Source: Phallusia mammillata
Lineage: Eukaryota
DNA: 64,000 bases
Reading direction: 5' to 3'
NCBI GenBank assembly: GCA_965637545.1
Contig: OZ281495.1
Span: forward strand, 21,700,001 to 21,764,000
Part shown: in pieces, positions 182-56,692 of the stretch
How the letters are laid out: each line of letters starts with the position of its first letter
Numbering within the stretch: position 1 is the first letter of the stretch
Notes under the pieces: generated by a model
The model's database searches: none
Told to the model about the DNA's origin: nothing
Seen by the model: only the letters and a program-made list of their open reading frames with translations
Position numbers and translations under genes: made by a program

Positions 182-3074
182 CTTCACAGAGAGTTCCATT
201 TCCTGCAAAGCCGTCTTTGCATTTGCACGTGTAATTCCCGATTGAGTTTGTGCATGTTGCATTGACATGACATCCATCGATCTTTTCAGAACATTCGTTT
301 ACGTCTGCAAAGGACAAAACTTTTAGAATTGAACCCTGAAATGAAACAAACTTGGATTTGCCCATGCCTTTCGACCCATAAGTGCTCACCGGATAAACAG
401 ACTTATTTAAACTTTCTCGTGGTCTGGGGAAGCTTTTAAATATAAAACATATAAAGGTTAGCATAGAGTTCAATTTGGCATCGTTTTGTTTTGGTAAATG
501 TCATTGGGCGATAACTTCCATTGTGGTCATCACATTTTTGACACAGGTTTGTGACTATGACAGAAATTCTACTAACGAAAAATAGAAAATACCAATGGAT
601 AGTAATTTGCTAAATACCCACGGGTAGCGCAAAGAGCATTAAAGAATATTCGAAGCCAAACTGTGTGAAAATACTGACGGTTAGGGTTGTTAGGGTGAGG
701 TTTTGTAAAAAAACAAACAATAAACACAGCTTATAAACGTAGTTCCCAACAGATTTGATTACTTGTGCAACGAAGCAAACGTTTTGGCTCGATGAATATG
801 ATTAACCACTTATGTTTTTCGTTTATGTAAAACCGTTATGAAACCCTGACGAATGACAGTCCTTAAACACTTGCTAACATATCAAATTAGGGACCATAAT
901 GAAGTCACACGTTTTTTTTTAAATAAGGGCAACATTTCAAAAAGTATCAATCTTGTCAACCAGTGTTACAGCTAGCGGATGCTCATGCAACAACGCATCA
1001 CAAGTGAATTTCGCTGATGTAACACCATTTAAAAGAGTTTCGCAAAAATCAGTGATTAATGGAACTATTTTATGCGGGGTATGTTAATAACAGATCATCT
1101 ACCAAAATATCCAGTAAGTTGTCAAAACATCCAGCGATTGTAATAAATAGTCACTAACTCTTGTATCGATGCAATTGTTCCGATGGAAAAAACAAGTATA
1201 GTAAGTATATTAAATTTGATTTTCGTTGTAATGTTTTATGGCGTTATGATTACAACTTTTTTACCTGTACATTCCCCTCCGTTTGTGCGAAAACCCGTAT
1301 CGCATTGACAAGTGTAACTGCCCATACTGTTCGTGCATGTCGAATGAGACTGGCAAGCATTCAACGGTGATTCACATTCGTTCACATCTAAAAATGTCAG
1401 TGTTAAACTTGTGTATAAAATATGCCGAGTCACACTGTTAACAAGTCACTGGATGCTTCTGCAACCGAGATAAGGGGATGCGGTCGTTTTGAAGTGAAAA
1501 CAATTTGACCCTTATCTCAAACTGCAGCGCTTATTGGGTTTCGTTTGAAGCAGAAAAACACACAAGGTTCGGTCATACAGCCCCAGGCGCCTCTTGCTTT
1601 TTAAGATTGTCAAAAATGAAAAAAAAACTTTAGGGAAGTTCATTTAACTGCGCTTCGATAATTTGGCTGAGGTCGCGTGCTGCGAAAGTTTGAGAATCAC
1701 TTTGCAAAAATTATTCGTTAGCGTACAAACTTAAACCGTTCAAAAAAAGTTAAAGTAAAAAAAGTTGTGTATAACCAGAACATCCATTTTTAAGTCGTTG
1801 CTAAAACGCAAACACCGCCAACCTTCGCATCTTGATCCAATGACTTCGAAACCGCTTTGACACGCGCAGGCAAGACCATTCCATATCGCACCATCAACAC
1901 ATCCATGATACTCCGCTTCGCACAATTGACCATCTATTTTAATAAAACAAATAGTAGGCACTACATAAACACAATAGAGAACTGATGTTATGTTTGAATG
2001 AGGCACTAAAGATGCTAAATAGGCGCACCATGAAATTCTATACTCGGAACTGAGTATACTTTCGTTTAAACCAACGGTATACATCTAAGTTGTTTCAATT
2101 GCCTATATATTTGATATGCTTACACATAGTTGTAACTTGTAAGCAGACCAAAAATTCGAACCCGAACCCGGATCGTTTTTGAGAAGCCCGTTTTGGTCCG
2201 AAAGTTTGATTGACAGGCATCTATAAATCCCTACAAAAGGCACTTCTGCACAGCATACAATTAAAAACGGCGTTTTATAGGGATGTTGGGTATTAGATGA
2301 AGTACAGCAACTAGATGCTTTTGGGTAATTTTATTTTTAACGGACAAAGGACACAGAATTTAAAGTCGGGCCCGAATCAAGCCCGTTTGTTTGACAAAAC
2401 CTATAGGCCCAAACCCGGCCCGAACCCGACCCGAAAAGCCCGACCCGACTTACAACTCTGTGCTTACATACTTTTTCTCCTGTCTGTGGCTTATCATCTT
2501 CATTTCTAACAAAATTAAACTTACCAATGCAATTTTCTTGATCAACCTGGCATTCTGTGCTCTTGGCGTTAGAGGAACTAGGCGGACTTAGCGGATCTGT
2601 GTTCAAAGACACGTCACGTGAGCAAACGCGTGTAGAAATTATGATGTTAAACTACCTAGCAGCTTACCGAACCTTGCCCTCCATGTTAAAACCACATCAG
2701 TTTGCCACCAAGTTTTGACTTCTTCCAGTCGCGTTACGTCAGCACTGAATTCACACCTTGAGATCGAAGTGGGCAGGACTGCAAATGTGTCCCCAAATTT
2801 GGCACTTCCTGCCACCGTCGCGTCTATACCTGCTGGCTTCTTGCAAAACGAGTGTTGGAAATCCACTGTGACAGACTTTGTCGGATCAACCTTGTTTTCT
2901 CCGACCGTATACGTACCATTACAGAAAGCTGCAATACAAACGTAATTCGTGTAATGATTTTAAGTACCTTGCGAGCCTAATACATGGTATTTATGGATGT
3001 GTATAACAAAGCTCACCTTCAATCGTTTTCCAGTTTGACAACAGCACTAAAGCGATGAACCATAAAGTATCCAT
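182..3074 (-). CDS. Adhesion-GPCR paralog F, 5' part only (signal peptide, X module, EGF/EGF-Ca exons); continues beyond the left edge
   Basis: Signal exon 3017-3074 MDTLWFIALVLLSNWKTIE|gtgag. Phase 1-1 X exon 2668-2928. EGF-like exons near 2525-2590 and 1825-1930. EGF-Ca exons near 1265-1390 (DVNECESPLNAC...) and 182-304 (DVNECSEKIDGC...). GAIN/7TM is not in the window, so GPCR identity is inferred from paralogy. Confidence 0.75.
2125..2460. mobile_element. hAT-type non-autonomous element (MITE) with ACCCGA subterminal repeats
   Basis: 8-bp TSD TGCTTACA (2117-2124 and 2461-2468). Termini CATAGTTGTAA / TTACAACTCTG. A related left end appears to start at ~44614. Confidence 0.8.
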
Positions 3075-4684: not shown

Positions 4685-10413
<5,729 letters not shown>

Positions 10414-11678: not shown

Positions 11679-14600
11679 TTACGACTGTGTGCTTTGAAAC
11701 GTTTCTTTGTAAGACTGAGAGTTGGTACCCAATCCACGGCTGCCAGATGTAGATGAAGTATTCTGGGATACAATCGAACGAATCGGAACCCACCAAATCT
11801 TACGCAATTCAGGGGAGCGAACAGATGTGAGAAAAAATATCACTACCCCCTACAACAACAAAAACCATGTACTTAATGGAGGCTTGTTTATTTGTGGCAA
11901 CTTTGCATCCTCAAATTACCTGCAAGGTGTTAAATATTGCGAAAAGCCAACTCATAATGCTGAAGTAGATCTCGTCGTTCGAGATAAGCATGAGATATCC
12001 GAACACCCAGGTCATCCCCATGATAGCTGACATGCTCGAAGCGATAATAAACATTTGTTTGTTTGTTCGCTTCATGGAGCTTGTTTGTGCCTGAGTGTAT
12101 TTTGCAATAAAAAAACGCAGTATTTTTAGTGTTTGTACAACTTACCTCAATATTTTTGCAGGAAATTTCACGCAATACAGTCACGAAAACTCCTAAGTTG
12201 AACAGGAAGAGAATTCCCACGGGAAGAAGAAATGCAAAGTTCAAAGAATGTCCGGTTAACCAGCACATATTTTCAGCGCGATACGTCGAATAGAAAATAT
12301 TGGCGTCATCTAAATCGGAAATACGTTTGATTCGACCTTATGATATTTATCATTTGTATGACGTCGTTAGACAGGGGTTTAACGTACGTTAAGCAATTCG
12401 CCCCTCTTGATGACCTCTATGACTGTTTAAATTGAAATGTCATCGTATTAAAGGTTTACGTTATCAATTAAACAAATCGGCCAACAATTTAATCAATTGA
12501 ACGCGAATTGAGAAGTTATGATTACTAAAGATAATAATCAGAATGCCAAAAATGTGATGCGTCGTAAGGTTTCAAAAGTCTTAAGGTTCTTCATGATTGC
12601 AGTAAATAATTTTAAACCTTGTTCTTACGTTGGAATTATCCGCTTCAAGCAACGCCAAAAATGATGCTAATCAATATTGTACAGTGTTATAATGACTGAG
12701 TTAGCCTGCGAAGTTGTTACGAACCTTCGTTACACAAATTGGTAGCAACTTTTGATCGATGATCGGCGTATCCCAATGTTAAAGCAAGAGTCAGACTGAC
12801 GACAACCAGTGGAGAGCCGTATGAAAATGCGGAAACGCGTTGAAGAAATCCCCCAGTATCTTCCCTGAACACCTGTAGGTATTTAAAATGTACCAAATGT
12901 ATCGCGGTTATTGATAGTCACTGTACCTACAGCGTGTTCTAAGGATCAAACACTATGTTCGCTATTAGCGTTAGCTATTCACTTTACAACAATATTTTGC
13001 GAAGCTATTCTTGTCTTGGCCGCTATTTTCTACTGTTGATCAATAACATTTAGGCCAATTAGTCAGTAATACCTTAACAACAGACATGTACATGTCGTAG
13101 CTGTACACGGCCATCCAGCACCAGGTGGTAAGCATGAAGTAGTGTAACAGTACAGCTACCAGCGTGCAAGCGTGGCCTGCGTTTGCTCGGGAAACTCCAG
13201 TGACAAAAATCAGGTATACGACCAGCAGGTTGCAGCAAATGTTTATGAGAATCTTTGCAGGGCGGCGGCGTCGGAGTTCACTGCAGAAATTGAATTGTTA
13301 CATTAAATGGTTGATATGTGTTTAGATATTTTGAGTTTTACCGATGAAGGCAATGCACGATGATTGTGAAAGCCAGACCAAGAATAGAAAGGATGCAACC
13401 AACGTCACTGACAATGTCAAGTGCTACGTCACTAGGAACAATCTTTGAATTCTGCATTACAATTATCAACGATTAAAAATATATATATATATATGTGAAA
13501 CAAAATAAAAGACAAATAATTGTGCTCAAACCATTTTCTAACGTACATGTGAATATAATCGATGTTGTCATTATTATTTAATTTTTAAGATTACAAAAAA
13601 ATGTCAAGAAAGGTTACGTTGCATTTGAGTGATACTTCTGTACTTACGACGAGTAAGGCAAAGTTTGTGAGATGATTGCAGCGACATTCCTTTGGGTCCG
13701 TAGAATGATCCAGACAACATCCATTTGTCGACCACGCGCTTCGATTAAAATCCCAATGCACACATTCCAATGTGGTTCTCGCTGCCTACATGGTATATAC
13801 GGTTTATCAATTCAACCTGTTTAAATAGTCTCTACAGAAAAGCATATATAATGGATTTGGCCAAATGCCACGGTTTACTACCATGAAAGAGTTATCGGTT
13901 GCAGTCTTTTCTCCATAATTAGCAGCCTCTCCTGGATGTTGTATCTTTACCGGATCTGTTAGATTATTCACCGGACTTCCGTCTCCAAGCTCAGCGGATA
14001 TAACCTAAACCACAACGGATGTTCACAGAAACGTTGTTGCTCACTCTGTTAAAAAATGAACGTACCGAAACATTTTCGGAGTCAAACAAAGTTGATCTGT
14101 CGTAATATATAAAAGCTGAGCGTACAGTGGTTGGTTGTGAAGAGTTAGTCGAACGCTTGCCCCGAGTTTGTGTAAATTTTGCAATTGCGGTTGCTGGAAT
14201 GTTGATCACAGGTGGATTGAATGTATTTAAATTGCTTGAAAGCGCAGGTTCAAAAACAACTGGGTCCTTGCTGTTGACATATATATCTTGTACCTGCGTA
14301 AAAATATGGATAAACCACAGTATTACGCGAGCAAAAGCCCCCCTGATTTTTTTGATTTTTTGCATTTTTTCGTTAGTTGAAAAAACAACACTGTTTATAA
14401 TGTTGCACCTTGACAGAAATAGATTCAGTAGCAAAAGTAAATGTTTCGTTTGGGGTGTCAAGATTAACTTGTAACAGTAGCGCTGATATTGCTCGCACAA
14501 CTTCAGTTCGTTGTGATCGGAGTAACACGGACGAACTTCGAAATATATTGCTGGCTGTCAATATTGTTGAATTGGCAAGACTAGATGTAACCTGATGACA

Positions 14601-17600: not shown

Positions 17601-18812
17601 ATAATACAGTGTAAAATTTGTGTAACGTTCTTGTATTCAATACAATGTGAGGTTTAATAAAGTAACTAGTTTGTTGTCGAGATGCAGAGAGTTAATTACT
17701 GCAATCTTGTAATATTATGCGCATTGCTTACTTTATTCACGGCACAAAAAGAACTTTGTGCGTTAATCTACATCAGACAAATAACAACGTACCTGGAATC
17801 TGACAAATGAATAACGCTATTGTACTTCCGTCAGTCCATTCCGTTCTGTTGCTGGTTCTGTTAAAAGTGCGACATTGCGTCGCATTACTACCCATGACGT
17901 AAAATTTTCCCGATTTTTCTGAAGCAAAACAGTGTGTTTAGTGGGTACGACCAAACACGAACCGATGGACAAGATAGCATGGAAATATTAAAGGACAACA
18001 TGTATCATTTGAAAGTGCAGGTTATGTTAAAAAATACAATATTTTGTTCAGTAAACGGTTTGCTTATCATATTTTGTGTTTTTAGTTAAAATATCAGACA
18101 GAATGGCAGATTTGTCTATTTTTGTTGCCCATTGTTTATACGTGACACGACCAGAGAAGGTACGTGTCAATTTCATGCAACGACGTCTACTATCACAATA
18201 GCCACAACAATTCTAAGCATTACCAGCTTCGATTGTGTTGGTTTGGCTATCACATGTGAAATTGGAAATACTTCGTTGTGTCAGTGTCCGAGCAAATTGC
18301 AGGTAGTCTTCCGTTAAGTTAAATAGTGTTCCGTTATATTTCTTACACTGTAGTTCGGCGGATGAACAATTGACACCATGATCCCCCACAAAATACACAA
18401 CATCGTCAACTTGATAGACGGATCCTGAAATGTAAGTAGATGAAACACACATCTGGTTGAATTTGACATTGCTTTACAGCAGGTTGTCAAACTGGCCAAA
18501 TTAGTTGATATAGCAACCAACTTTAATGGAATGATCGGTGCACATTTTAAAGCTTTAGTGTTTCATTAAGCCAATCTTCTTGACATGTTCTCCGCCCTAG
18601 TCATTCTTTATCAAGCTCTAGTTGCTACATGATTCACCTCACGGTTATCCATCCGGTGTATAGTCACATCGGCACAATAACAAAGTTAAACAAAATGGGT
18701 AACAAAATGTAAAACAAAACTATACACCTCTTTGTGCCACCACAACATAGCAACCGAAAGTACAAAAAGTTATCCACGCTAAGTATCGGTTTATGCTGCG
18801 TTTTGTTTTCAT
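11679..18812 (-). CDS. Adhesion GPCR paralog D (SP-CTL-like-X-6 EGF-GAIN-7TM), complete
   Basis: Signal exon 18728-18812 MKTKRSINRYLAWITFCTFGCYVVVAQR. CTL exons ~18235-18424 and ~17793-17920, X exon 17345-17593, EGF exons ~15130-17285. GPS exon 13648-13785 ([13 protein letters not shown]), TM2-3 exon 13073-13280, TM6-7 exon ~11927-12100. Stop after ...FQSTQS at 11679. Confidence 0.94.
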
Positions 18813-42600: not shown

Positions 42601-45600
42601 TCTGTGCCAAGTTGACATAGAAATTTGTAACAAAGGTGATGTAAGGTTAATATTGCGGATTTTGTTACAAATGGTGCACATTGTGTTGTGATAATACAAC
42701 CTAAATTATTTGCAAAAGACTCTGTGTTTGATGTACAATTAAAAATATAGTTTGCAATAAATTATTTAAAAAAATACGAATACTTTTCGTCAGTTTATTT
42801 TTTTAATGAGCTTAACCTGCACTAGTTATTTGAAAACAAAACACATGAACATCTTTTTCAGAACGTTTTATACGTCCCATACCTGTGCACTCGGTTCCAT
42901 TTGCTTGAAAACCGTTGTTGCAAAGACAATTATAAGAACCCAAAGTGTTCAGGCAGGTGGCATCAGCATGACATTTACTAATATTTGTTGCGCATTCTTC
43001 AACATCTGCAAAGGTAAGTTGAATATTGACGCACTTTAATAAAAAATAAATGATAAGCTTAATGCTCGAGGTTTTGGTTTTCGTGCCAATAAAAGTTTTC
43101 TGAAACATTTTTGTGTAGAATATTTAATATTTTTTTATTTTGCTTAGTAATTATGCAAATTGATTTTACAGGCTCTCTAATTGCTGTTTGACTTTGCAAC
43201 GCTTAAAGTGCTGATAGAGATTAAAGTGTGTGTTTTTAAGAAAATGTACTATAGCCTATATAATCTAAACCAGTGCTGCGGCTAGTGACTTAAGAAATCG
43301 CCATGTGTGCCTCAAAAACTTTTATGAACAGCGCATTATATTATCATAATTATCGCATACTTTGTGGCATAGGAATATCTATCACAATTAAAATACAAAC
43401 TAAGTTCGCTGAATATTTTCTGTGTTTTAACCTGTAAACGTGTAAAGTATGCTGCTAACAAAAAAGTGGTTATTATTGGACCAACAACCTAAAAATGTTA
43501 GGCGTTTTAGAATTACCATACCATATGCTTTACCTTCACAATCGATTCCGTTGCCTTCAAAGCCAAGTTTGCAAATGCATTCGTAGGAGCCGAGGGTGTT
43601 GATACAGGTGGAGTTAATATGACAATCAGTTGCGTCTGTTTCACACTCATCAGTGTCTAAAAAATATTTCTAAATTTATCAAGCACAAACCAATAGTTTC
43701 AGAAGTGCAATTTTTTTTTTTTTTGATTACCATCCATATGTTTTACCTTCACAATTAATTCCGTTGCCGTTGAAACCATTTATGCAAGTACATACGTAAG
43801 AACCCATAGTATTGTTACATGTTGAGTTGGAATGGCAACTGTTGTCCCCTACCTTGCACTCATCAACATCTGTGTGGTAATTGTATATTAAACATACCCT
43901 CTACTATTTTTCAAACATCGAACCAAAGAATACCTTCACAGTTAGTTTCGTTTACATAATAGCCAGCGTTGCATGTACAATGGTACGATCCAAACGTGTT
44001 GTTGCAAATCAAATTTGGGGCGCACGGTTTCGATTTTGAACATTCATCCACGTCTACAAGCATTTGTTGTTGTTTTTAATTATTTTGGGGCAGGTAGGGG
44101 TCAACATTTTGCAGACAATTTTTTGTCCGTTTTATTAAAGTTCAGATCTCCTAACTTGTTTAGTAATCAACACTGCACAATACAATTAGTTTGACATTAA
44201 TGGTAAAAGGTGCAACTAATTTGAAACAATAATGACAAAGTATAAATGATCTATTTTAAACGACACTTGAACTGTAGTGGTGGTGTTGGCGTTGAAAAAT
44301 TCTTAATAATAAAAACAATCCATTTTGCTTGCAAGTTGATACAACTCATAAATTTTTTTCAATGGTGGTCAGTTTATCGTTTATCTTACCATGACAATAG
44401 AAAGTGCCGCGGCTTGTATTATCTGTGAAGTATCCTTCAGGACAATTGCATTGGTAACCTCCCGGCCAGTTTTCGCACGGAGCAAAACGGTACCAATAAC
44501 GTCCATAGTAGCAATAACCCGGTATTAGGCATTCGTCAATATCTGAAATAAACATTCTTTTTTCATTACGCTGTTCATGGTTCTCATCATTGAGAAGCAA
44601 TGTGTTATCCTGTCAGAGTCGTAATTCGGACTGGGCTTTCGAAATTGGGTTCTGGCTTAAGCTTAAAATAACCGGACACGAATCGGGTTTGACACCACCG
44701 TTGGCATTGTTTTTTTGCCACGTTTTTGCCTAAATTGGGCTTTATTTTTTCCTACGTTAACCGGGTTCCATGTGGACTCCGGGTTCCATTTTAACAAATC
44801 TACCCAAGTAACAGATTGCTCCTTTAACTTCTATACACACATGTTGACCACCACCGTAATGATAACTGCTGCTCTCGTTTTATTTATTTTCATTCGGACA
44901 TCGGCATGACTGTTAACTTCGTAAATCTTTCAACTCCAAAGTCAGATTTGAGGTCGACAGAAACGTGACAGTTCGTTTGTTTTAAACAGACACACCTGTA
45001 CATTGAGTTCCGTTTCCCTCAAAGCCGGGTTTGCATGCGCAGTTGTATGAACCAACGATGTTGTTACAAGAAGAGTTGGCGTGACATGCGTAAGTGTTTG
45101 TTGCACATTCATCGACGTCTAAAAAGGAAAATTCAAAAAGTACAGGAAATTGTAATTATACAAAACACAACTGCCATTTTGTATGAGGCAGAAACGCCTA
45201 AAGTTTTATTTTTTATTTTTATATTAAGTTAGTAATATTATTCGTGGTCTCCATACATTCCATTTTCAGACAGTTAAACGGACAATTACACAAGAGAAAC
45301 AATACACATTTTCAAAGCGCTTACCATCGCATTAGCTATTTGTCCTATTTCATTGAAAATCCTATTCTGACAAATGCATTTGTAACTTTGTGTTTAAGCA
45401 TTTGAGCAAAGTCTTATTGTGGAAACTTGTTAGTGCGGCTTTGTTTAAACTTTGAAATATTGCACCGTCAAGCATTCATCAATTACGATTAATGTGTGTG
45501 AAACAGCAGTTTATTTATTATAGTATCTTAAAATATCTGCAAACATTGTGTTTTAAAGAAGATTTGCACAGTCAAACCAACTGACTTTCGTTATCGATGA

Positions 45601-47592
45601 CTGAAGATTAAATTAGAATGCGTTTTGCCTTACCTGTACACTGACCGCGGCTACTTTCAAATCCTTCGTCACAATCACATCGAAAGTCCTTGCAAGTGGC
45701 ATTTGCCTGGCATAAAGCATTTGAATCTGTGTAAACGTTAAAAAGGAATGTTTAGCAGGAATTTATATGCAACAATTATAACCTTCTGAACCCTTTACAA
45801 TTACACTTTATACATTTTAAAAGATTTAGAATCGCTACTTTTAGCAGTTAAAGCTACATATACTATACCTCCTTTTGTGACATTATTCCAATAGAGTACA
45901 AAATACCGTTCGCTCCAATAATTTCCAAGCCTTGTGACATTGTATGTTACCGAACAGTCGTTGTTCCGTACTGTTGTTAAACTAACTGTGTAGCCGTGAG
46001 TCTGGTGATCGATTGTGGTGTTAAGCCAGAGGAATTGACAACATTGGGATATTTGAATGTTCACCAACTTCCATTCTGAACATCGGCTTCGGCCAATCGG
46101 TGTTTCTCCGATTGTTCCTAAAATTGATAAAAATGTTCAACTACAATAATAATAGAAAGCGATTTCGTGGTCTCTGGCAAGCTATTTTTTTTTTGCGAGT
46201 TGGTCTGCAATTTGCCATTGCGGTGACGTTCGTTTCGTGAAATGCTTGCAATACCTTACATTCATTTTGCGCAGTATTTTCATTTATAATAACACTTTAC
46301 AATTTGTTTAGATAAATTATTGTAGCTTTAAAACTATAAGAGAATTGATTCGATGTTTTTTTTTACCATAAGACCAGAAGGGCCTACTTTCGTAACCAAA
46401 ATGGTTATAACTATAGTGGCATCGGCAACGGCGTATAAGTTTCAAAGGAAAGAATCTTTTTTAAGTCGATACTTTCACATTTGTGAAATTTATAACGAAA
46501 TACATACACATTTTTTAGGGATAAAAGCTCCCTCTTGTATCGGTATGTTCTGACGCCCATGATAACCGGGGTTAAAACGTACCTTTGAATTTACAAATAA
46601 AGAAAGCCAACGTGTTGCAATTTATCTGGCTTGTGCTGTTGTCTTTTCTGTCAAAGGCCATACAGCTTCCATCACTTTGAGCCGCTACGTAAAACTTTCC
46701 TTCTCTCTCTGTTTTCAATACCCGATACTTTGTTGTGAATCTTTCATATTAAATTTTAAATATTTGAAAATATTTATAACTTACCCGCGTCTTCGGTCTT
46801 TGACTTATCAAAGCATGCATAGCTGGAAACATGTGTGTTCGTTATCTTCCAGGCAAAAGTTGTGTTTTCGGGAGACAAGTTGTAAATTTTTCCTTGGTTG
46901 TAATTCGAACACTCTGTTTTTGCATTCTCGTAGCTTAAGGCAAGACTCCCAACAAAGTAAACGTCGTCATCAAACTGGTGAATAGATCCTTGAATAAAAT
47001 ATTAACACACAAGCTTAAGTTTATCAAAATCAATTTAAAAGGTTAAAAAACGCGACCTCCTTAGCGTAGGCCTGCGTCTTTTCGGGGATTCAATTGTTCT
47101 TAAACTTTATGACATTTTTACACTTCTCTGGTTGCACGTTGGCGTTCCCTAAATTTATATGACACAGACTGCTATTTTCTTTACGGCTTCCCCCATGACT
47201 TCAGTACAAACTACACTAAGTGATCCAGGCGATATTTTTAATGTGGTCTACCGGGGACATTTGTATGTAAAAAGACCACCTTATATTACATAACTTTGGA
47301 ACCAATGAAGTCTAACTTCTGTCCGGATTATAAGATAAACATAGCAGTGCTGAGTCGAGATAAGTAATCTTATGCGTGCATAAGCAATGATTTATTATAT
47401 AGTTAGAACTCAAGTCTCGTTTAAAAAATAATTTAAAATAATATTTTTTTATCTTGTATAACTCAGTTCCCGTTTGAAACTATACGTTTGACGTACACAA
47501 GAATCAGATTAAATTTTTTATGCTTTGCACCTACCTCGTTGCGCAGTTACCATGCTGCAGCAAATTGCGACAATTACTGCAATGGTCTGCAT
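36608..47592 (-). CDS. Adhesion GPCR paralog B (SP-CTL-like-X-11 EGF-GAIN-7TM), complete
   Basis: Signal exon 47535-47592 [22 protein letters not shown] exons 46785-46988 and ~46583-46710, X exon 45869-46117, 11 EGF exons ~41055-45730. GPS exon 39192-39329, TM2-3 exon 38708-38915, TM6-7 exon ~36895-37065. Ends ...TEFTQS* at 36608. Confidence 0.94.
37613..37686 (-). tRNA. Atypical tRNA-like Pol III gene in a gene B intron (predicted anticodon GGA, short variable arm, C33)
   Basis: GCCTGCG TA GCTG AGTTGGTA GAGC GC GAGTC CCGGAAA GACTC CTGTC GTGGG TTCGAAT CCCAC CGCAGGC T. Perfect acceptor, anticodon and T stems, A-box, B-box GGTTCGAATCC, and T6 terminator 3 nt downstream. Confidence 0.6.
37792..37934. 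repeat. Perfect 64-bp inverted repeat with 15-nt spacer (foldback/MITE-like), TTAA at both ends
   Basis: Arm 37792-37855 is the exact reverse complement of 37871-37934. Degenerate single arms occur near 23880, 26640 and 29890. Confidence 0.9.
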
Positions 47593-47710: not shown

Positions 47711-47945
47711 CAGTGGTCGGCAACCGCCGGTCCGCGGCCCGGTACCGGTCCGCGAGCAGTTTGTTACCGGGCCGTAAAATTTTTCAGGTTAAATGCTATG
47801 AAACATTTTGCCCATGTATCCCGGGGGTGATAAACTAATTGGGCGTTTTTATTGCTAAATATTTGTAGTTTTTTTAAAGACCGGTCCGCGATAAAGTTAT
47901 CCTTTCAAAAACGGTCCGCAGTGCAAAAAAGGTTGTCGACCCCTG
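47711..47945. mobile_element. Same MITE family as 25765, opposite orientation
   Basis: TIRs CAGTGGTCGGCAACC / GGTTGTCGACCCCTG, TSD TTTTATAC, homologous internal sequence. Confidence 0.88.
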
Positions 47946-48295
47946 TTTTATACAGTTGCTTTTCGTACACTTGTAGATTAAATCTAGCGCCTGCTAAAGA
48001 AATCGAGCTTAAAAGTACTAAAAGGTTGTCACTAGAAAATCTACACTCAATTCTGATCCTAAGCAGTTGCCATGCATACAGTCTGTCTGCCCACTAATTA
48101 ATTAATCTATTGATTAGTAAAGGAAGTGTGGTAATAGCGCAATGCGTGCTCACTCACTTGAAATCAGTCAGACCAAACATCAAATCAAGCCTCCTGCAAA
48201 CGCTTTATGATCGAAAACCTAACATATTTTAGTCCTATTCTTTAGTCAGTTTTGAAGTTATTTTAGCTGTAAGTTAACCTCGAAAACCCTCCATG

Positions 48296-48600
48296 CAGGG
48301 GTCGGCAACTCTTGGCACGCGTGCCACCCTTGAAGTGGTTTTTCATTGCACTTCAATAGATTTGCGTGTTTATCTTCAAGTAACAATTTAACCTATTACA
48401 CCGCTTGTTTATAGTTTTTATCGTGCCATTGTCCTAAAATTTAGCCTTACATGCACAAAACCAATCTGCTTTCTCTTTATCATTGATATCTGCTGGCACG
48501 AACCACTATTAGTTAGATAAACGTTGACACGCTAAGTCATTAACACATGGAAATAACAAGTAACTTGGCACGCGTCGCCCAAAAAGGTTGCCGACCCCAG
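48296..48600. mobile_element. hAT-type MITE (CAGGGGTCGGCAAC TIR, GGCACGCGTG subterminal motifs)
   Basis: TIRs present; homologous to 50521-50830 in the reverse orientation. Confidence 0.8.
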
Positions 48601-48742
48601 TATGAACAGAAATATTCAGCATGTTTAAGATAGCAAAAAGGTTTTGTATTTTGTACCACATAAAAATACTGACATAAAAAACGCCAAAAATTGTTTTCAT
48701 AAGGATTAAAAAAACACATTATAAATCGCTAAAACAAACATG

Positions 48743-51700
48743 TCAGCGTTTTTTCCCGTGCATTAATGTTAAGTCTCCCGCTCCGTTGCCACAAGCCGCC
48801 GAGGAGGTAGATTGCTTTCGAGGCGCACTTCGAAAAATTCCAGAGCCGGTAATGATCGAAGTTCGTCGAGCCATACTTCGTAATGGAGACAGCCACACCT
48901 TACGCATGTCAGAACGCCGAACCGAGGTTAGAATAAAAATAGCGAAGCCCTGTGAAAAATAGCGGACGTTGGACATTTATTACGAACCTAATAATTAGTT
49001 TACTGTATCTTCCGTTTTCGCCACTTAAGAAGACTGTTTTTTAAGACTTTACAAAAGATATAAATTAAACGTTTCTATTTACGGATAAAATTAAAATTTA
49101 ATTATATTTTAATGACCTGACCCGTTTGGTTAGTCGGAACTGCATGGTTTAACAGGGTATAATGTAGCAAACATTAATTTGTTTTAAAAACTTACACAAA
49201 CCGGCAGCGATAAAAAAGCATGATGTGCCAGTGTAGCCTACTGTGCAGACAACGCATGATGTTGTGTTTCACCTGAAGTGTGCAAAGGACAGCAAATAGC
49301 CAACTAGTGATAGTCTCGAAAAGCTGATCGTCTGATATCAACACAATGTATCCTGACGCCCACGTAAGCCCAAGCATTGACGTCATAGTAACAGCTATAA
49401 TAAGGTTTTGCTTTGCTGTGCGTCGGAGCTCACGTGATCTCGCCTGCAAATAAGCCATGCCATTTACGGTGGTCAAATTGCGTTAAGGCTTGTTTGATTT
49501 ACTTATGACTGTTTAATTGCATCAATTGCGTGTGTTTTGGCGTAATACAAATCCATTGTACCTTTGTTTACAACCTTCAGTTTCACAAAATGAGGTAAGT
49601 ACTTAGTAACCGTAGATAGAACCTTGGTATTTTTTTCAAAAACATAATTCGTGCGTTTTACCAGATTCATACAAACGAACCCAATAGAATGGTTTTAAAT
49701 ATGTACACTTTTCAAATTATATAGCATTGAGCGCGTGTAAATAGTGCTCACTTGACATTAATATATGGATATTTGATATGGTGGCATGCCTACTGGTGGC
49801 AAATTAAGCCCGCGCTAAACCCTGGACGCCTTTTTTGCATAATAAGTGGTATACCATATTTTGCATGAACAAAGAAAACAAAATGCCTTGGTATACAATA
49901 TAGTTAGGTACAATAGCTAGGTATGTATCGTGGTTTTCACTAGCTTTTAAAACCCTTGAATATTTGTATACTCTACCATTCTACCATTCTACCATTTACC
50001 CTGCATTCTCGTTAGAATCAAGACAGAAAGAAATCGTTCACACTGTTTTACAAACCTGTGAATTATTACACGAGAGCTCATAGGTGACTCGACAGAACAC
50101 CACGCAATTGTAAACCAACATGATGCCAATGGGAGCTAAAAACCCAAAATAAAGCGAGTATTTGTGAAGCCAACACATGTTTGGAGCTCGGTAATATGAC
50201 TCAAGTAGAAGATCGTCTCCTGTGACACAATAAATACATGATTAGACTCGGAGTGGGGTTGAGCATTTTGGGGACATTTCGAGTTTAAACAAATAGACCT
50301 CGGTCTGACTTCACACTCGGTCACATTTGTATCGCATTGCTTTGGTAATGTCGGGCCTAAGTAAGGTTTTACTCAATAGAATTAAGTATGGATCGAGTTT
50401 GTTAGGCTATGGTGCATGAAGAGCAAGCCCAGAATAAACTCGAACCGAACCCAATGTACAGTAATTAAAGCCCTTTTCGACTGGGGGTTTATTCATTTAA
50501 ATAATTTGGTATGTATAGGCCAGGGGTCGGCAACCTTTTAGGCGACGCGTGTCAATTTACTTGTTATTTCTATGTGGTAATGACCTCGCGTGCCAACGTT
50601 TTTCTAAATAATAGTGGTTCGTGCAAGCAGATATCAATAATAAAGAGAAGTCAGCGTGTTTTGTGCATGCAAGGCTAAATTTTAAGATAATAGCTTGATA
50701 AAAACTATAAACAAGCAGTGTAACAGGTTAAATTGTTACTTCAATATAAACACCCAAATCGGTTGGCGTGTCATGAAAAAACACCTTGCGTGCCAAGGTT
50801 GGCACGCGTGCCAGGGGTTGCCGACCCCTGTTATAGGCCTTAATGAAAGTTTACATATTGTCTGCATACTCAATAACACTATACATATTTTTATGTGCAT
50901 ACACTATTGTGTAAAAAAAATTAAGAAGCGAAACAGGAATAAAATAGTATACCTGGAGTACATAGACCGCTCACTCGCTGTTGATCAAAGTAGCCAATCG
51001 CAATACCCGCTGTGATAATGACAATTGCAAGAGGTAGCCCGTATGCGTACAACATACAAAGTTGCAAAAAGCGTCGCGGTCGTTCGTCAAACACCTGTTG
51101 TTAAAAAGACGTTCAAAAAGGCACTTTTGCCAAAGGAAACTGATAGGAACGGCATGTTGCAATAGATTTATTTATGAGTTTTTTTTAGTTGTATCGTATA
51201 AATGGTAAAGACATAATATTCCCGACGTTGTGACAATTTCTAATGCAATAAACCATATACCCCTGGAATCGTGTATAGTGTTAATTTTTTTAACGGGCAA
51301 TAAACTGAAAAGGTGCAATAATAGTGGAAAAGTTGGCCTATACAGACAAATACACTTTTTACAAGGGACAGTGGTACTGAAAATGTACCTTTACTAGTGA
51401 CTTGTACATGTCGTAGCTGTAGACGTTCATCCAGCACCATGATGTAAGAAGGAAGTAATGAAGTAAGGCAGTAGCAAGTAAACAGCCGTACATGTTGCTC
51501 GTTTGGCCGATCGCAACCACGAATATAAGATACGTGATAAAAAGGTTGCAACAAATGTGGATTACGATTTTAACAGGACGTCGCTGTCGGATTTCTCTGT
51601 TGTTAAAATTGATACAATTGTAATGTTAAAATCAAATATACCTGCTTGAAGCCGACTGGTTCATTCCTATGGATGATAAAACCCCACATTAATAGTACTG

Positions 51701-54700
51701 CAGGAACCGTTTGATCACAAACTAAGGTTAGCAAAATGTAGACTACAAGGCAAAAAACGTTTCAACATTGCTGCGTGTTTTGTTTTTTTAATTTAAAACA
51801 TTTAACTGTGTACAGACAGTTTTGGGTAGCCTATATCATTATTCAAAAGTGATGATTTATCCACTCATTTTACACAGGTTCAAAGAAGGAACATAACCAA
51901 CTTGCGTACCGGTCAATAAGGTGCACAATTACAGTCAACAATAACCCAACCATAGAAAGGATGCATCCCACGTCACTCACAAGAGAAAGCGCAATATCGG
52001 AAGCCACCACATCTGACTTCTACAACGCAAAATAATCCATCAGTAGACGTTTTTTTCAGCTTTGTCTCTTAATGTATCTATACGCCGTAACAATCAATTT
52101 TGTTACAAATACCTGTGACTTAGATCAGTGACTCACAAAAACTTAATTTTGCTATTTTCCAAGACACATGGGGATGCATTTTTATCTGCAAACAGTAAAG
52201 CTTTTCGTTTTTTTTTAATTCGCTGTGCCCTTTTCGGAGTTTATTCGGGCTGTTGACCAATCAATATTATTTTGGCCGAACTTTTAGTGCGAGTCCTTTT
52301 TAGCCAGACAACTTGTGACGTCACAAACATAAACAGCGTTAACACGTTAAAACAAGCTGTTGTGAAATTATTATTGCGCAACAGTATATAAAGCAGAGGG
52401 AAAAAAGGTACTTTACAAAACTGGTCACCCAAAATAATTTCCAGGTCACAAATCACGTTTTTGGGAAACACTGCTTCAATTCAATTAATGTGTTGAGAAG
52501 ATTATTGGTAAACATACGTAGGCTGCAATACACTTACAACAATCACAGCAAAATTTGTGAGATGGTGGCATCTGCACTCTGGTGCTCCTGTATCGGAGAT
52601 GTGTAGGCAACATCCTTCAGAGCTCCACCGACGAAAATTTTGATCCCAGTACACGCATCTACTTAATGTGCGTAAGGACTGTATGGTAATAAAAACAACA
52701 CGTAAGCATAATAATAATCAGGAAAGAAAAAATCTGTCACTTGCCTTTAAGGTGTTTTCTGTCACGGGAGTTTTGCCGTACTTTAATAGCTCGTCCAGAC
52801 GTTGTATTCGAACTGGTTCAGTAAGATTGTTTAGCTCCAAATCGACGCCAACATCGATTGACATCACCTAACGGAATTAGCAAACTTTCACGCTTTTCAT
52901 TTTTGTCATTGCTCTGAACGGTAGAGCTACTAACGTAAGAACTCAAATTACAAAAAAAGTTTGCTCATATCCAATAGAGAGCGTAAAGAACACAGTTATT
53001 TAAATTAACAATGAGACTGGGACAGGGTTAGAAACTGATTTAACGTCAGGAACTAAGTTTAGAAGTTGGTTTTGTTGTTATTATTATTGTGAACCACGCC
53101 TTAACCGCATGAGCTCTAACCGTCAGCATTTTCACACAATTTGCTTTTAAATATTTGCAATTGCTCTTTGAGCCATCCATCGATATTCGCAAATTTGTGT
53201 GATGTGAGTTCTTAAGTTATTAGAATTTCTGTTCTGAAGCCAGTTATAAATTCCACTTGCTTACCGAATCGACATGGTCCTGGTCTGAATAGAACAGTGT
53301 GTCGTCATAGTAGTAGATAAAGGAACTTCTTACGCTTTGCCAACTTCTTGACTGTCTTTGTTGGCCAGATGACAGTAACGCCGCCTGTTGTAGAACGCTT
53401 CCGGGAACAATGACACGGATGTGTTCATGGGTGTTTGTTCCGTTTGCATTGTTTTCAAAAGTTACTGCCGAAGAAACGTCGGTATTCTCGGAAACCTGTT
53501 AAAAAGGTAGTTCAGTTTAACACAAAATAATTATGTCTTCCTTAAAATTTACAAGCGAAAAATTTAAAATTAAGGTAAAGCACACTTGAAGCAGCAAAAA
53601 TGTCTCTAAAACGATCATTTACGTGTTTAATTTAACTAGATTAAATGCACAGTGGAGTATACTTTAAAACACTGAAAACATTCAACCGAAAGTGTAACAT
53701 CAAACTGACAAAGAAATGCAGTGAGTCGCAGGGAACAATAAGTCATGTCATTAGGTTTTACAAAACAAATCGGGTGATATTCAAATCGTGTATCATTTTA
53801 AAGAAAACTCACCGTACGTGTAAACCCAAATAAAGTGTAAACCCAATTACCTGTAAATCCAGGGATTCTGAAAACAGTCGGAACAAAGACGCGTTTTTTA
53901 ATTTGAACCTCTGGGCAAGTTTAGAGAGAGAATAAGCGAGTTCCTGTTGTTCGACATGCTGCTTAGCAACTGTATCATGTGAAGCATTTTGTTCATCTGT
54001 ATCATATGTAGCATTTGCCCATGCGCGAGAAACCAGGTCATTTGCAAGCAACGCAATGTTGGTAAAGGCATTCTCGCTCACCTAAAAAAATTGGTTAAAA
54101 TTTTGTGAATCGGTTTATAGTTAAGCAGTAAGTACATCTTAGTCATAAAACCTATATTGAAACAAAATCTGAAAATATGTTTTACCTGAACATTTTTGTT
54201 TTCCGCATTGATTCTGACGTAGGCCACGAAGGCAACAACTGATGACCTTTCTTCTGACGTCAGACTCGCCTTGGTAAGCGTAAAATTAAGCAAGTGTCCA
54301 CTGAGATAATCAATATCGACCTTTGACGTTTCGTTGTTTAGCACCTTAAAACACAACAACGCTATTCAATTGTAAGATATAACACGACATGTGACTATTC
54401 CAAAAGAGTGTTTTAGAGAAGTGCCAAAACTGCAAACATGATACATCCGATAAACAGAGAAGAATTGTTATTACGTCGAAGCAAAATAATAGCAAAACTT
54501 TTGAAACTGTAAAAAAAATGTACTGAATTTGCAGTTTGGTCTGCTCTAGGATATAACACAATAGCCTAGAAAAACTTTCCTCAATGAATGAAATCTCCTT
54601 GCAAGTACAGCAAGCGACTGCGGCCATTCAGGGTCTTGAATTCAATATACAGCGACTGATTTAGTGTTTTTACTATAAATTCTTTTGTGAATAATAGTAT

Positions 54701-56692
54701 ATATCTACGTTTTTCACAAGCGATGTGATCTTCTTCTCGCAGTCAAATATGCGCAAAGTTGACGTCATTAGCCTGTAGCGGCCTCGGTATGGCCCCTCTC
54801 CGCAGGACTCATCGTACAAACAAGATATAATAGCTTTTGGAAATTCTACAGAAAATCTCGTTGGTTATCAATTGTCATGAATAACTGTACGATGCATATC
54901 AGTTTAATATGCTGATTCTTCTTTGTTTAAAGTTTCGACTAGCACCGACTAGGTATTGTTGAAAGCTTGATTCAATATATTTGGTTGTTGTCAGCGGAAT
55001 GTCACGCGTTGTTTAGCAATACTGTGAACATTTAGGTTCGCGCCGGGTTCGAAATTAAGTTTAAATAATAGTTAGATGCGAAATTGACTTCACACGCGGC
55101 CAAATTTGAGTCGTAATTTTACTTTGGTAAATAGAAAATCTAAATTTTCGAGTTTGGTGCTGTGGGATTGTTATTTCAGGCGCGTTTACAATTTTTAGTT
55201 GCAAATTCTAAATCTTCTAAATATAAGGTAACACAATAATTTTGTTACCTGAATTTGGACATTTCTCTCGGGATTCTGCAATTGAACTTGTTGAAAAAAC
55301 TTCGAAATAATATTCCCTTGTTGAAGACACCCTAATAGTCTTGGACTTACATTTATCTATAAGCAACAGATCAACAGAATTATATTAGGCATTAGAGATT
55401 GAACTAGGACTGCCATCATCATTATAATTTCGAAATACTTAGAAAAGATAACCGCCTCGTTGGAAATTTAGCTTCATACAAATTTCTCTGCTCTGGCACA
55501 GAAATGAAATCCCTATTTTCTATTTAACTTTTTTACAAAAACTTAAAAACGTTCATGCTTTGTAATATACGTAGCCTATCCGATAATTTTTTTATGTAAA
55601 ACATTCGACCCTGCCCCAGTCTAAAGCAAACCATCGCAAAACTGTATGTTTTTGATACCTGACTTATAAAGTAACAGTTGCCTGATGGATTATTGTATTT
55701 ATGTTTTTTAATTTTACCTGGTGACATTCGTAAGTGCCTCGCTAAGCATTTGCACTCTTTTGTTGTTTCACCATCTTGCTGCTGGCATTGTAGAGTTGTA
55801 TTTAAACAAGGCAAACTATTATTGCAGCTTTCTATTCCTGTCAATCAATACAAAGTGTTTGAAAAGTTAGTTTGACCGATACTACATCGTTTGCATACCT
55901 GGGTCGGTTTGGTTGAGGCAGGAATACTCACAAGCGTTTTCTTCATGTTCGCAGCATATCACGTCATCCTTACTAACATTTCCAGAAGATACGACCGGAT
56001 TCGACACTGAAAAAAATAACATTTATTTCAAATGTTCTTGCGAAACACTGCTTTGGCTAAACTATAACATTATAAAATTCGTAACCACCGAACTGAAGAA
56101 TGTGTCGCTGAAACGTCACCCACACTCGAAATAATAGTTGTAAAGCTTGCCTAGGCCATTACAACAGCAACGACAATTTCCCCCCCAAATTACCTAATAG
56201 CCTAATTTAAAAGGGTTGAATTTAGCGTACTGCTTTGAACAGAAAGTTATACATCAGAAGCTTTTACATTTCTAAGCCTTTATGTGCCCAAAATTGGCAA
56301 CTTTTAAAAACGCGAAGCCTATTTAACTTGAGTTCAATTTGGCATGAGTGCTGTTGCGCAATTGGCTCGCGGAAGTAGAAACTTGACCAGGTCAATTTTA
56401 GACGTAAAAAGCCAATTCAAATGATCTAACCTTTTATCATAGCTGCGCTGTATATAGTCTTGCACAATAAACACATCACGAAACTAACCAGGTTGACAAT
56501 CGTTGCACAGAATCTGAACTGTTTAAACTTTACACAACCGTTTTGTGTGGCACGCTTATTATAACATGAAGTGAGCTTATGTTTGACATTGACATTCTAC
56601 AATGAACAAAACAAAATGCGATTAATTTTAGGGTACTAACCTGCAATTCTAATAACAACACATAGCACCAAAACAGCATAACAAGCATTCAT
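48743..56692 (-). CDS. Adhesion GPCR paralog A (most divergent; short Cys-rich N-terminus, GAIN, 7TM)
   Basis: Signal exon 56641-56692 MNACYAVLVLCVVIRIA. GAIN exons 54186-54344, 53851-54081, 53265-53495, 52745-52867. GPS exon 52538-52678 (CVYW...GCC...CRCHHLTNFAVIV). TM exons 51910-52019, 51389-51596, 50953-51094, 50056-50219, 49273-49443; last exon 48743-48949. Exon order between 54700 and 56010 is only partly resolved. Confidence 0.9.
50521..50830. mobile_element. hAT-type MITE, same family as 48296
   Basis: CAGGGGTCGGCAACC...GGTTGCCGACCCCTG; TSD GTATAGGC/TTATAGGC (7 of 8 match). Confidence 0.85.

Follow-up and report, generated by a model that had tools for sequence, protein, structure and literature searches.

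Adhesion GPCRs are the least understood class of GPCRs. The vertebrate EGF-TM7 receptors (ADGRE1-5: EMR1-4 and CD97) have a variable number of tandem EGF and calcium-binding EGF domains at the N terminus, along with a GAIN/GPS autoproteolysis motif and a class-B2 7TM. Their paralogues are clustered, with evidence of exchange between neighbors. Adhesion GPCRs with an N-terminal C-type lectin domain have been described in amphioxus (Nordstrom et al. 2008, PMC2246102). In Ciona, 21 of 30 adhesion GPCRs were described with a GPS domain only (Kamesh et al. 2008, PMC2396169); the unclassified ones are a densely packed, tunicate-specific expansion with no clear vertebrate orthologues.

We analyzed a window of 64,000 nucleotides from Phallusia mammillata (contig OZ281495.1), along with the sequence to its left, and found an array of predicted adhesion GPCRs that is like each of these systems in part. 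It shares the features of the EGF-TM7 receptors that are listed above. However, ADGRE receptors have no lectin head, while in four genes of the array (B-E) a C-type-lectin/Link-type domain (CTLD) and a domain with a predicted H-type lectin fold (which we call X) precede the EGF stalk. Also, differences in EGF count between the genes of the array are built into the gene structure and do not depend on alternative splicing alone. The array resembles the unclassified Ciona receptors in all the respects given above, but its ectodomains are resolved (CTLD, H-type lectin fold, and EGF stalk) and the family is far larger, with at least 69 genes that have the 208-nt TM2-3 exon in common. As for amphioxus, the Lectin_C domains pass the Pfam threshold, whereas the CTLD of the array is below it; the domain list of that paper, as we read it, has no H-type lectin, unlike the array, and we noticed no description of a variable-length EGF stalk (PMC2246102).

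We consider it quite probable that this is a lineage-specific array of seven adhesion GPCR genes that arose by tandem duplication of whole genes, after which ectodomain exons were gained, lost, and duplicated. The array is a clear case of receptor diversification through exon duplication.

Seven tandem genes on the minus strand

A sequence-only reading of the window had proposed six tandem genes on the minus strand. Self-BLAST of stop-free pieces and tblastn with the exons of gene D confirmed head-to-tail, minus-strand paralogs, but the tblastn comparison raised the count to seven (genes A to G). Each gene has one signal-peptide exon, which is always at the 5' end.

Gene A (48743..56692) encodes a signal peptide, a short Cys-rich region, GAIN/GPS, and a 7TM, and its draft chain is open. 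It is the most divergent member of the array, without lectin, X, or six-Cys EGF modules, and we found no Pfam domain upstream of its GAIN. The end of the cluster as first proposed, 56692, turned out to be the start codon of this gene's signal-peptide exon (56641-56692). Genes B to E each encode a signal peptide, the CTLD, X, EGF modules, GAIN/GPS, and a 7TM: B is at 36608..47592 (11 EGF modules; draft of ~1500 amino acids), C at 19650..35440 (~23 EGF modules; draft of ~2000 amino acids), D at 11679..18812 (6 EGF modules), and E, which is transcribed and spliced, at 4685..10413 (1 EGF module). The 5' part of gene F is at 1..3074, with the signal-peptide exon (3017-3074), the X exon (2668-2928), and the first EGF exons. 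The remainder extends left of the window to -9562 and has at least 14 further EGF exons, GAIN, and a 7TM; tblastn places the GAIN-7TM core at window positions -9562..-6327. Gene G, the seventh member, lies entirely left of the window (-15872..-10432) and has neither lectin nor X. All of these genes, and all of their features described below, are on the minus strand.

Gene models were built by dynamic programming with trained splice matrices and paralogue homology, and they recovered the RNA-confirmed introns (see below). An earlier version based on codon bias alone over-predicted mini-exons and was dropped. In the draft models, each of the seven genes can be read in frame along an unbroken GT-AG chain that starts at an ATG and ends at a stop, and the conserved exons of all seven are free of stop codons. 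The model of gene D is clean (21 exons, 1213 amino acids), and the drafts of A, C, E, and F still have read-through or missing exons. Homology and fold searches used single exons; spliced chains were built only to check the continuity of the reading frame.

A shared GAIN/GPS-7TM core

The exon structure of the GAIN/GPS-7TM core is common to all seven genes, with lengths checked against AG/GT boundaries. The TM2-3 exon has 208 nt and the TM6-7 exon 171 nt in every gene, the TM1 exon has 110 nt (107 nt in E), and the GPS exon has 138 nt in B-F and 141 nt in A. This agrees with the common intron positions, the 208-nt TM2-3 exons, and the 138-nt GPS exons of B-E that had been read from the sequence, and adds the GPS exon of F. 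The GPS exon of E (6878..7015) includes CNHL|TNFALLV and is delimited by AG/GT boundaries and an RNA contig. Its homologs are at 13648-13785 in D (where it matches Pfam GPS), 21199-21336 in C, 39192-39329 in B, and 52538-52678 in A. Similarly, the TM2-3 exon of E (6106..6313) has homologs at 13073-13280 (D), 20716-20923 (C), 38708-38915 (B), and 51389-51596 (A).

Among single exons of gene D, Pfam identifies 7tm_2 in the TM2-3 exon (E = 1.9e-9), GPS (E = 8.2e-12), and EGF_CA (E down to 1.4e-10); the TM6-7 exon matches 7tm_2 at E = 6.8e-4 and 19.4 bits, just under the cut-off of 20.6 bits. All seven GPS exons contain C-x-C-x-H-L-T and TNFA(L/I/V)(L/I)V, that is, the HL|T cleavage motif and the tethered-agonist sequence. 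The 7tm_2 match and a GAIN/GPS directly before TM1 identify these genes as predicted adhesion GPCRs (class B2). That the proteins cleave themselves at HL|T and are activated by their tethered agonist is predicted from the conserved motif only.

In phmmer searches, the 7TM exons matched the solved structures of ADGRG2, ADGRG6, ADGRL3, and ADGRE5, and the GPS exon matched the GAIN regions of ADGRD1, ADGRF1, ADGRG3, and ADGRG6. The best match varies by exon: ADGRG2/G6/G4 for TM2-3, ADGRD1/F1/G3 for GPS, ADGRD1 for TM5, and ADGRL3 for TM6-7. These scattered single-exon matches support the view that the array does not appear to be assignable to a single vertebrate ADGR family. We rejected membership in ADGRE/EGF-TM7, judging from the single-exon matches: ADGRE was never the best match for an exon, with ADGRE5 and ADGRE1 lower in score or absent (for TM2-3, ADGRG2 scored 47.7 bits versus 32 for ADGRE5 and 25 for ADGRE1), and the ectodomains of B-E are not EGF alone.

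Lectin-type domains at the tip

The sequence-only reading gave the family a tip made of a lectin and X. This holds for B-E, but F has X only and A and G have neither. (Low-score local alignments to the lectin and X in A, F, and G were rejected as spurious.)

The CTLD is short (~109 amino acids) and is split over two exons. These are at 46785-46988 and 46583-46708 in B (46583..46988; both phase 1-1), 35079-35308/35321 and 34894-35019 in C (34894..35321), 18224-18424 and 17793-17918 in D (17793..18424), and 10041-10268 and 9807-9938 in E (9807..10268). The 102-nt intron between the exons of E is in frame and free of stop codons. We searched 1.84 billion proteins with a profile built on the first lectin exon and obtained just three matches (E = 1.3e-5 to 5.5e-4), to proteins with 5 Xlink, 6 Lectin_C, and 7 Lectin_C domains. 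The numbers of matched stretches (4, 6, and 7) are near or equal to these domain counts. By this sequence homology to CTLD/Link domains, we classify the lectin exons as a putative divergent domain of the C-type-lectin/Link superfamily. Weaker signals point the same way. The best Pfam Lectin_C match, in gene B, has E = 0.019 and 16.1 bits (cut-off 22.6), and Pfam found no convincing match to the lectin exons or X even with E allowed up to 10. Against PDB sequences, both lectin-exon profiles matched snaclecs and mannose receptors, always below threshold (E = 0.15-1.3). The AF2 model is unusable (pLDDT 42.6; its input included read-through of the in-frame intron in E, and the single-exon rows of B-D were partly misaligned by MAFFT), and its N-terminal half has the order beta-beta-alpha-beta-alpha. 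By eye, the exon translations lack the EPN/QPD sugar-binding motif, and all that is left of the WND motif is W-I-N in gene C and W-T-D in gene D.

X is a single-exon domain, present once in each of B-F and absent from A and G. Its exons are at 45869..46117 in B (249 nt), 34418..34678 in C (261 nt), and 17345..17593 in D (249 nt), all three of phase 1-1; at 9291..9557 in E (267 nt, with a weak donor, GTTGAG); and at 2668..2928 in F (261 nt). The F copy was used for folding and gave an AF2 model with pLDDT 94.3. Its top 16 structural matches all have the H-type lectin fold (Z = 7.2-10). They include the Helix pomatia and Helix aspersa agglutinins, discoidin I, SLL-2, and phage or pyocin fibre tips, at Z = 8.4-10 over 81-85 of 86 residues. 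Foldseek's best match is the Helix pomatia agglutinin (2ce6, TM 0.60), and the Atlas features of this domain fall in H_lectin clusters (0.94, 179 features in common). We predict from the model that X has the H-type lectin fold. Like Helix pomatia agglutinin, discoidin I and II, coral SLL-2, and the fibre tips, it would be a six-strand beta-sandwich (rmsd 1.9-3.0 Å over nearly the whole domain), but it is only 12-16% identical to these lectins, and no copy of X, nor its relatives in the gene described next, matched Pfam H_lectin (PF09458) at E up to 10. Known H-type lectins occur in soluble form, as trimers or hexamers, or as fibre tips, whereas X occurs as a single copy in a predicted membrane receptor. 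The literature that we searched yielded no report of an animal GPCR with an H-type lectin fold.

The same genome contains a gene of the form [H-lectin-like - EGF - EGF]n (G000:C5:18.20-18.24 Mb) whose repeated domain is homologous to X (profile E = 1e-8 to 6e-3; 29-33% identical to X from F). In both this gene and the array, the domain is on a single exon and is followed by EGF exons. The unit is repeated many times there, whereas X is single-copy in each gene of the array. The GAIN/7TM exons of the array had no match at this gene in the 30 kb examined.

A stalk of variable length

The sequence-only reading had noted that EGF exon counts differ (1 in E, 6 in D, 11 in B, and about 21 in C). Our recount bears this out with ~23 in C and the other counts as given; F has at least 17, and the stalk ranges from 0 to ~23 modules across the array. 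The ectodomain exons are all of phase 1-1, so modules can be gained or lost with the reading frame intact. In B, C, and D, a conserved bridging exon of 65-95 nt lies between the final EGF exon, of phase 1, and the GAIN exons, of phase 0, and connects them.

Genes C and F contain near-identical cassettes of EGF exons (95.6-98.7% identical), so the length of the stalk is still changing. In gene C, two tandem copies of a ~2.76 kb cassette with five EGF exons (23384..29001) are 98.7% identical. The 15 mismatches and 4 gaps between them are all intronic and the exon peptides are identical. A third, older copy (29492..31308) is 88.6% identical. One EGF exon at the duplication junction (28930-29550) is split by ~490 bp. 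The 2.76-kb cassette was found by BLASTN and missed by Tandem Repeats Finder, as the period exceeds its limit.

Divergence and transcripts

Among B, C, and D, amino acid identity falls from 82-84% in the GPS+7TM core to 55-57% in GAIN, 36-37% in the CTLD, and 20-27% in X. With dN of 0.03-0.16 and dN/dS of 0.05-0.2, the core is, by these estimates, under strong purifying selection, which bears out the conserved signalling core of the sequence-only reading. That reading also had a rapidly diversifying tip. The tip is indeed far more diverged (dN 0.4-1.0), but positive selection is not part of the result, as saturation of dS in the tip rules out an estimate of dN/dS there. Patches of low dS in the core point to gene conversion, which would inflate the contrast between core and tip.

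A check of the models against RNA had been proposed, and it succeeded for three core introns of gene E, the one gene covered, in runs that we guess to be RNA and at a depth of ~3. Spliced contigs with 0 mismatches remove the introns between the TM6-7 and tail exons (4942..5244, GT..AG; contig of 282 nt), between the TM1 and TM2-3 exons (6314..6590), and between the GPS and TM1 exons (6698..6877); the last two are removed in the same contig, of 266 nt. We rejected a retrocopy as the source of these contigs because the TM1 exon of E is unique in the genome. None of the reads connects the lectin, X, or EGF exons with the GAIN-7TM exons, and the full-length architecture is thus that of the gene models.

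Alternative explanations

The head and EGF exons might be separate secreted lectin/EGF genes, like the [H-lectin-like - EGF - EGF]n gene, that lie upstream of short "GPS-only" GAIN-7TM genes. The homology of X to the repeat in that gene, with no array GAIN/7TM match in the 30 kb there, would fit, as would the lack of a transcript that bridges tip and core and the 21 of 30 Ciona receptors with a GPS domain only (PMC2396169). But each unit has one signal-peptide exon, always at its 5' end, the bridging exon that joins the last EGF exon to GAIN is conserved in B, C, and D, the models have no terminal exon with a stop codon between the stalk and GAIN, and the order is preserved in five paralogues, which makes this very unlikely. 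Also very unlikely is that several members are decaying pseudogenes or that the near-identical cassettes are assembly artefacts. The interrupted EGF exon in gene C and transcripts from gene E only could be read that way, but an exon of phase 1-1 can be skipped without a frameshift, the conserved exons of all seven genes are stop-free, and the core shows strong purifying selection. As to the cassettes of gene C, their 15 mismatches and 4 gaps imply that they are distinct and not a single copy assembled twice.

A germline system for non-self or allorecognition, with a diversifying, polymorphic tip, variable copy number, and expression in haemocytes or gametes, would account for two lectin-type domains at a tip that is 3-4 times more diverged than the core. 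Tandem arraying is frequent in immune receptor families, and the recent cassette duplications in C and F could be polymorphic. However, with saturated dS, dN/dS above 1 is not demonstrable, and two exonic RNA contigs, which cover core exons only and come from a run of another study than the DNA runs, are identical to the assembly. Also, at least 69 adhesion GPCR genes in this genome have the same 208-nt TM2-3 exon and they form many arrays, so an array is by itself a poor guide to function. We view this explanation as unlikely, and an immune or allorecognition role is unsupported. A more specific version, a polymorphic recognition locus where individuals differ in tip sequence and EGF cassette number and where self-cleaving GPCRs sense glycan "identity" at fixed distances from the membrane, seems quite unlikely.

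Proposed mechanism and significance

We prefer the explanation that whole genes were duplicated in tandem and that ectodomain exons were then gained, lost, and duplicated. The predicted receptors share a constant part, comprising GAIN with an intact HL|T autoproteolysis motif, the TNFA(L/I/V)(L/I)V tethered agonist, and a class-B2 7TM. To this would be joined a stalk of 0 to ~23 EGF or calcium-binding EGF modules and a variable head (CTLD and H-lectin-fold in B-E, H-lectin-fold alone in F, neither in A and G). The head may bind an extracellular ligand, probably one that bears glycans, and a rigid EGF stalk would set the head's reach from the membrane. Force on, or displacement of, the cleaved N-terminal fragment would expose the tethered agonist and activate the 7TM. 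Our results establish the gene structure, the identities of the domains, the gradient of conservation, the recent duplications in the stalk, and the transcription and splicing of the core of gene E, whereas we infer the class of ligand, the cleavage, the signalling, and that a single mRNA contains both tip and core.

The 2008 picture of ascidian adhesion GPCRs as "GPS-only" probably reflects incomplete gene models. The predicted receptors of the array form a natural series: the core for cleavage and signalling is nearly constant, while there are 0 to ~23 EGF modules and two, one, or no lectin-type domains. The length of the stalk and the identity of the head would thus be variables open to direct test, in a chordate model with experimentally manipulable embryos. 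We know of no animal with an allorecognition or microbe-sensing system based on adhesion GPCRs; if the locus did prove to be a polymorphic recognition locus, it would be such a system.

A tandem array of seven receptor genes

We describe a tunicate-lineage array of seven head-to-tail minus-strand adhesion GPCR (aGPCR) genes, labelled A to G in transcription order. The window, C2:21700001-21764000, contains no gaps and is about 37% G+C, and its exons and introns are short and eukaryote-like. When we compared all stop-free minus-strand pieces with each other, a conserved 3' block appeared five times in complete form, with many EGF-like pieces upstream of each copy and further EGF pieces at the left edge of the window. 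Single exons of gene D, the second copy from that edge, matched the Pfam models 7tm_2 (E = 1.9e-9), GPS (E = 8.2e-12), and EGF_CA (down to E = 1.4e-10). Genes A (48743-56692), B (36608-47592), C (19650-35440), D (11679-18812), and E (4685-10413) lie within the window, while F starts at 3074 and runs off it. Searching D's exons against the 40 kb to the left, we found the GAIN-7TM core of F at -9506 to -6327 (negative positions are left of the window) and the core of a seventh gene, G, at -15785 to -13650; beyond G's core, there were no more array copies down to -40000. So the sequence-only reading correctly recognized a tandem minus-strand array, but its count of six genes must be revised, as F's core and all of G's core lie outside the window. 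Gene A is the right-hand end of the array, and the POU transcription-factor gene that had been noticed beside it is confirmed on the opposite strand, by the C-terminal part of a POU-specific domain exon (62224-62472, plus strand; Pfam Pou, E = 3.5e-6).

We built gene models with a splice-aware chain search, for which we trained splice matrices on conserved exons of the array itself and also drew on homology between the paralogues. All seven genes have an uninterrupted chain from ATG to stop and exactly one signal-peptide exon, with a phase-1 donor (the copies in B-E share the ends ...AQR or ...GQQ), and all of the ectodomain exons are phase 1-1. The draft proteins are at least 531 (A), about 1513 (B), about 1996 (C), 1213 (D), at least 816 (E), about 1517 (F), and about 685 (G) amino acids long; these lengths are approximate because the drafts for A, C, E, and F still include some read-through or missing exons. 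Aligning the genomic copies and checking each AG/GT boundary, we found that the TM2-3 exon is 208 nt and the TM6-7 exon is 171 nt in every gene. For the GPS exon, the length is 138 nt in five genes (B-F) and 141 nt in A; the TM1 exon has 110 nt, or 107 nt in E, and in B, C, and D the TM4 exon has 148 nt. This upholds the core exon lengths reported before (208 nt for TM2-3 and 138 nt for the GPS exons of B-E). The stop-to-ATG gaps between neighboring genes are 0.84-1.6 kb (10414-11678, 18813-19649, 35441-36607, and 47593-48742), which leaves very little room for promoters and 3' ends, and read-through or chimeric transcripts between adjoining genes are possible.

The transcript evidence is for gene E only (the one gene short enough for 6 kb) and comes from contigs of one run that we presume to be RNA, at a depth of about 3 and over core exons. 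These contigs match E's exons with no mismatches, and the three stretches that they lack are precisely predicted introns with GT..AG ends on the minus strand: 4942-5243/5244 (where the cut could shift by one base), 6314-6590, and 6698-6877. The genome has a single copy of E's 107-nt TM1 exon, and the spliced contigs are therefore not explained by a processed copy at another place. A 2414-nt contig from run X1, at a depth of 107, has three mismatches to the conserved part of the TM2-3 exon (6104-6177), so another member of the wider aGPCR family may be far more strongly expressed than E in this run. Separately, an intron of E contains a repeat element (7979-8279) that matches dozens of short contigs from all four runs at 90-95% identity, and the loose ends of these contigs lead into unrelated sequence. 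This element is probably a dispersed repeat of SINE- or TE-like type that is transcribed.

The signalling core and the wider family

All seven GPS exons contain C-x-C-x-H-L-T and then NFA(L/I/V)(L/I)V, which we predict to be a canonical autoproteolysis site and a tethered-agonist-like sequence. They also share an extra cysteine beside the second GPS cysteine (G-C-C-L; for example, in 13648-13785 and 6878-7015).

We ran all similarity searches on single exons, exon by exon. Against solved structures, the best matches were ADGRG2/G6/G4 for the TM2-3 exon (E = 1e-11 to 1e-9) and ADGRD1/F1/G3 for the GPS exon, and the TM5 and TM6-7 exons had weak matches to ADGRD1 and ADGRL3. Neither ADGRE5 nor ADGRE1 was the best match for any exon. 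Because the matches are scattered over the ADGR families, the array cannot be placed in ADGRE or in any one vertebrate family, and we reject membership in ADGRE. This result is in line with the 24 Ciona aGPCRs that Kamesh et al. (PMC2396169) left "unclassified", and it agrees with the view that invertebrates have aGPCR subfamilies beyond the nine vertebrate ones (PMC6900090).

Across the genome, at least 69 loci have the same 207/208-nt TM2-3 exon, and there are at least 158 six-frame matches to 7tm_2. This expansion is far larger than in Ciona, for which 30 aGPCRs were reported in 2008. Many of the TM2-3 loci are in other tandem arrays, on contigs C2 (28.2-28.3, 30.3-30.7, and 32.9-33.1 Mb), C3 (24.76-24.93 Mb), and C1 (14.26-14.42 Mb). 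By the TM2-3 exon, six members of our array are mutual nearest relatives genome-wide (64-100% identity to D); A, at 59%, resembles D no more than does the nearest copy from outside the array (61%, at C1:33.6 Mb).

The lectin-type head

A single exon, phase 1-1 and 249-267 nt long, encodes X in B, C, D, E, and F, and the copies are only 11-27% identical to each other. A profile of X identified five further copies at C5:18.22-18.29 Mb. With these added to the alignment, AlphaFold predicted a six-strand sandwich (pLDDT 94.3), whose best Foldseek match was Helix pomatia agglutinin. In a second structural alignment, phage tailspike and R-pyocin fibre tips, the Helix pomatia and Helix aspersa agglutinins, and discoidin I all matched with Z = 8.4-10 (rmsd 1.9-3.0 Å over 81-85 of 86 residues); coral SLL-2 scored Z = 7.7, and Z dropped clearly after rank 16. 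Independently, a protein-language-model atlas placed X beside clusters of PF09458 (H_lectin; 0.94, 179 shared features). Pfam's H_lectin model itself did not match X. From the fold matches and the atlas neighbors, we assign X the H-type lectin fold.

The nearest relative of X outside the array is the C5 locus (G000:C5:18206001-18236000, minus strand), a gene of many [X-like exon, EGF exon, EGF exon] repeats. The array's GAIN and 7TM exons had no match in these 30 kb, which suggests that exon shuffling has carried X-EGF modules between receptors and genes for secreted lectins.

The "lectin" module (CTLD) consists of two phase-1 exons, of 201-243 nt and 126-132 nt, and is found in B, C, D, and E only. 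The lectin-plus-X tip ascribed to the cluster therefore stands for these four genes, while F carries X alone. A profile of the first CTLD exon matched only these four places in the genome. Among 1.84 billion representative proteins it had three matches in total (E = 1.3e-5 to 5.5e-4), to proteins with 4, 6, and 7 matched stretches and with 5 Xlink, 6 Lectin_C, and 7 Lectin_C domains, respectively. Since all three are Xlink or Lectin_C proteins, we classify CTLD, by sequence similarity, as a putative divergent member of the C-type-lectin/Link superfamily. Below Pfam's thresholds, the C-terminal exon matched Lectin_C (E = 0.019, positions 75-107 of 107) and the N-terminal exon matched UL45 C-type lectin-like (E = 0.02) and Xlink (E = 0.12). 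Against PDB sequences, the profiles had only weak matches to snaclecs and the mannose receptor, in the expected register. No EPN or QPD motif is visible and the domain is short (about 109 amino acids), so classical calcium-dependent sugar binding is doubtful. The AF2 model was unusable (pLDDT 42.6). The first-exon profile found no close relative in other organisms, in a search where an orthologue of 30% identity could miss E = 0.001; this is consistent with a lineage-restricted module.

Stalk length and divergence by domain

The number of EGF modules is 1 in E, 6 in D, 11 in B, about 23 in C, at least 17 in F, 2 in G, and 0 in A; the earlier counts for E, D, and B are unchanged, and C had been put at about 21. 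Most modules open with the calcium-binding signature D/N-x-D/N-E-C. Gene C has two tandem copies of a five-EGF-exon cassette (about 2.76 kb) that are 98.7% identical, with all 15 mismatches and 4 gaps in introns, and a third copy that is 88.6% identical. Gene F has about 3.3 copies of a two-exon, 495-bp EGF unit (95.6-97.3% identity). These near-identical cassettes argue that stalk length has been changing recently, by unequal exchange within genes. Gene C also has an EGF exon (at 28930-29550) that is interrupted by some 490 bp of unrelated sequence, exactly where the young (98.7%) and old (88.6%) cassettes meet; the chain search bridges this interruption by positing a new intron, which leaves 61 + 122 nt in frame.

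The tree for GPS+7TM is (A,(F,G,(E,(B,C,D)))), in which the clade of lectin-bearing genes, B-E, has support of 94/93. Comparing B, C, and D with one another, we found amino acid identities of 82-84% for the core, 55-57% for GAIN, 36-37% for CTLD, and 20-27% for X. The exons for GPS, TM2-3, and TM6-7 have dN of 0.03-0.16 and dN/dS of 0.05-0.2, as compared to dN of 0.41-0.84 in CTLD exons and 0.74-1.0 in X. The proposed excess divergence of the tip is thus present, but saturation of dS, in the tip as in most of the gene, means that one can neither demonstrate nor exclude positive selection. There are also patches of low dS in the core of B-E (0.4-0.7 in TM2-3 and 0.24 in TM6-7 for B vs. D; for example, 13073-13280, 11920-12090, and 36894-37064). 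These point to gene conversion or to constraint at the nucleotide level, either of which would exaggerate the contrast between tip and core.

Novelty, origin, and proposed mechanism

EGF-stalked aGPCRs (ADGRE) are already known. So are amphioxus aGPCRs with C-type lectin domains (PMC2246102) and unclassified ascidian aGPCRs (PMC2396169). In the library searched, we found no published report of an H-type lectin on an animal aGPCR (the two terms occurred together only in work on Toxoplasma, a paper and its preprint) and no literature on Phallusia aGPCRs. What this analysis adds is the array described here, together with its CTLD module and the series of stalk lengths.

We propose that the array arose by tandem gene duplication, and that its phase-1 ectodomain exons were themselves shuffled and duplicated. 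Since the HL|T site and the tethered-agonist sequence are conserved, the receptors probably work as aGPCRs usually do: the N-terminal fragment would hold a ligand, force or displacement would expose the agonist, and the agonist would activate the 7TM domain. Given two lectin-type modules, our best guess is that the head binds a glycan-bearing ligand. A role in immunity or allorecognition, to which the cluster had been likened, is a candidate that we consider rather unlikely. The EGF stalk would set the reach of each receptor.
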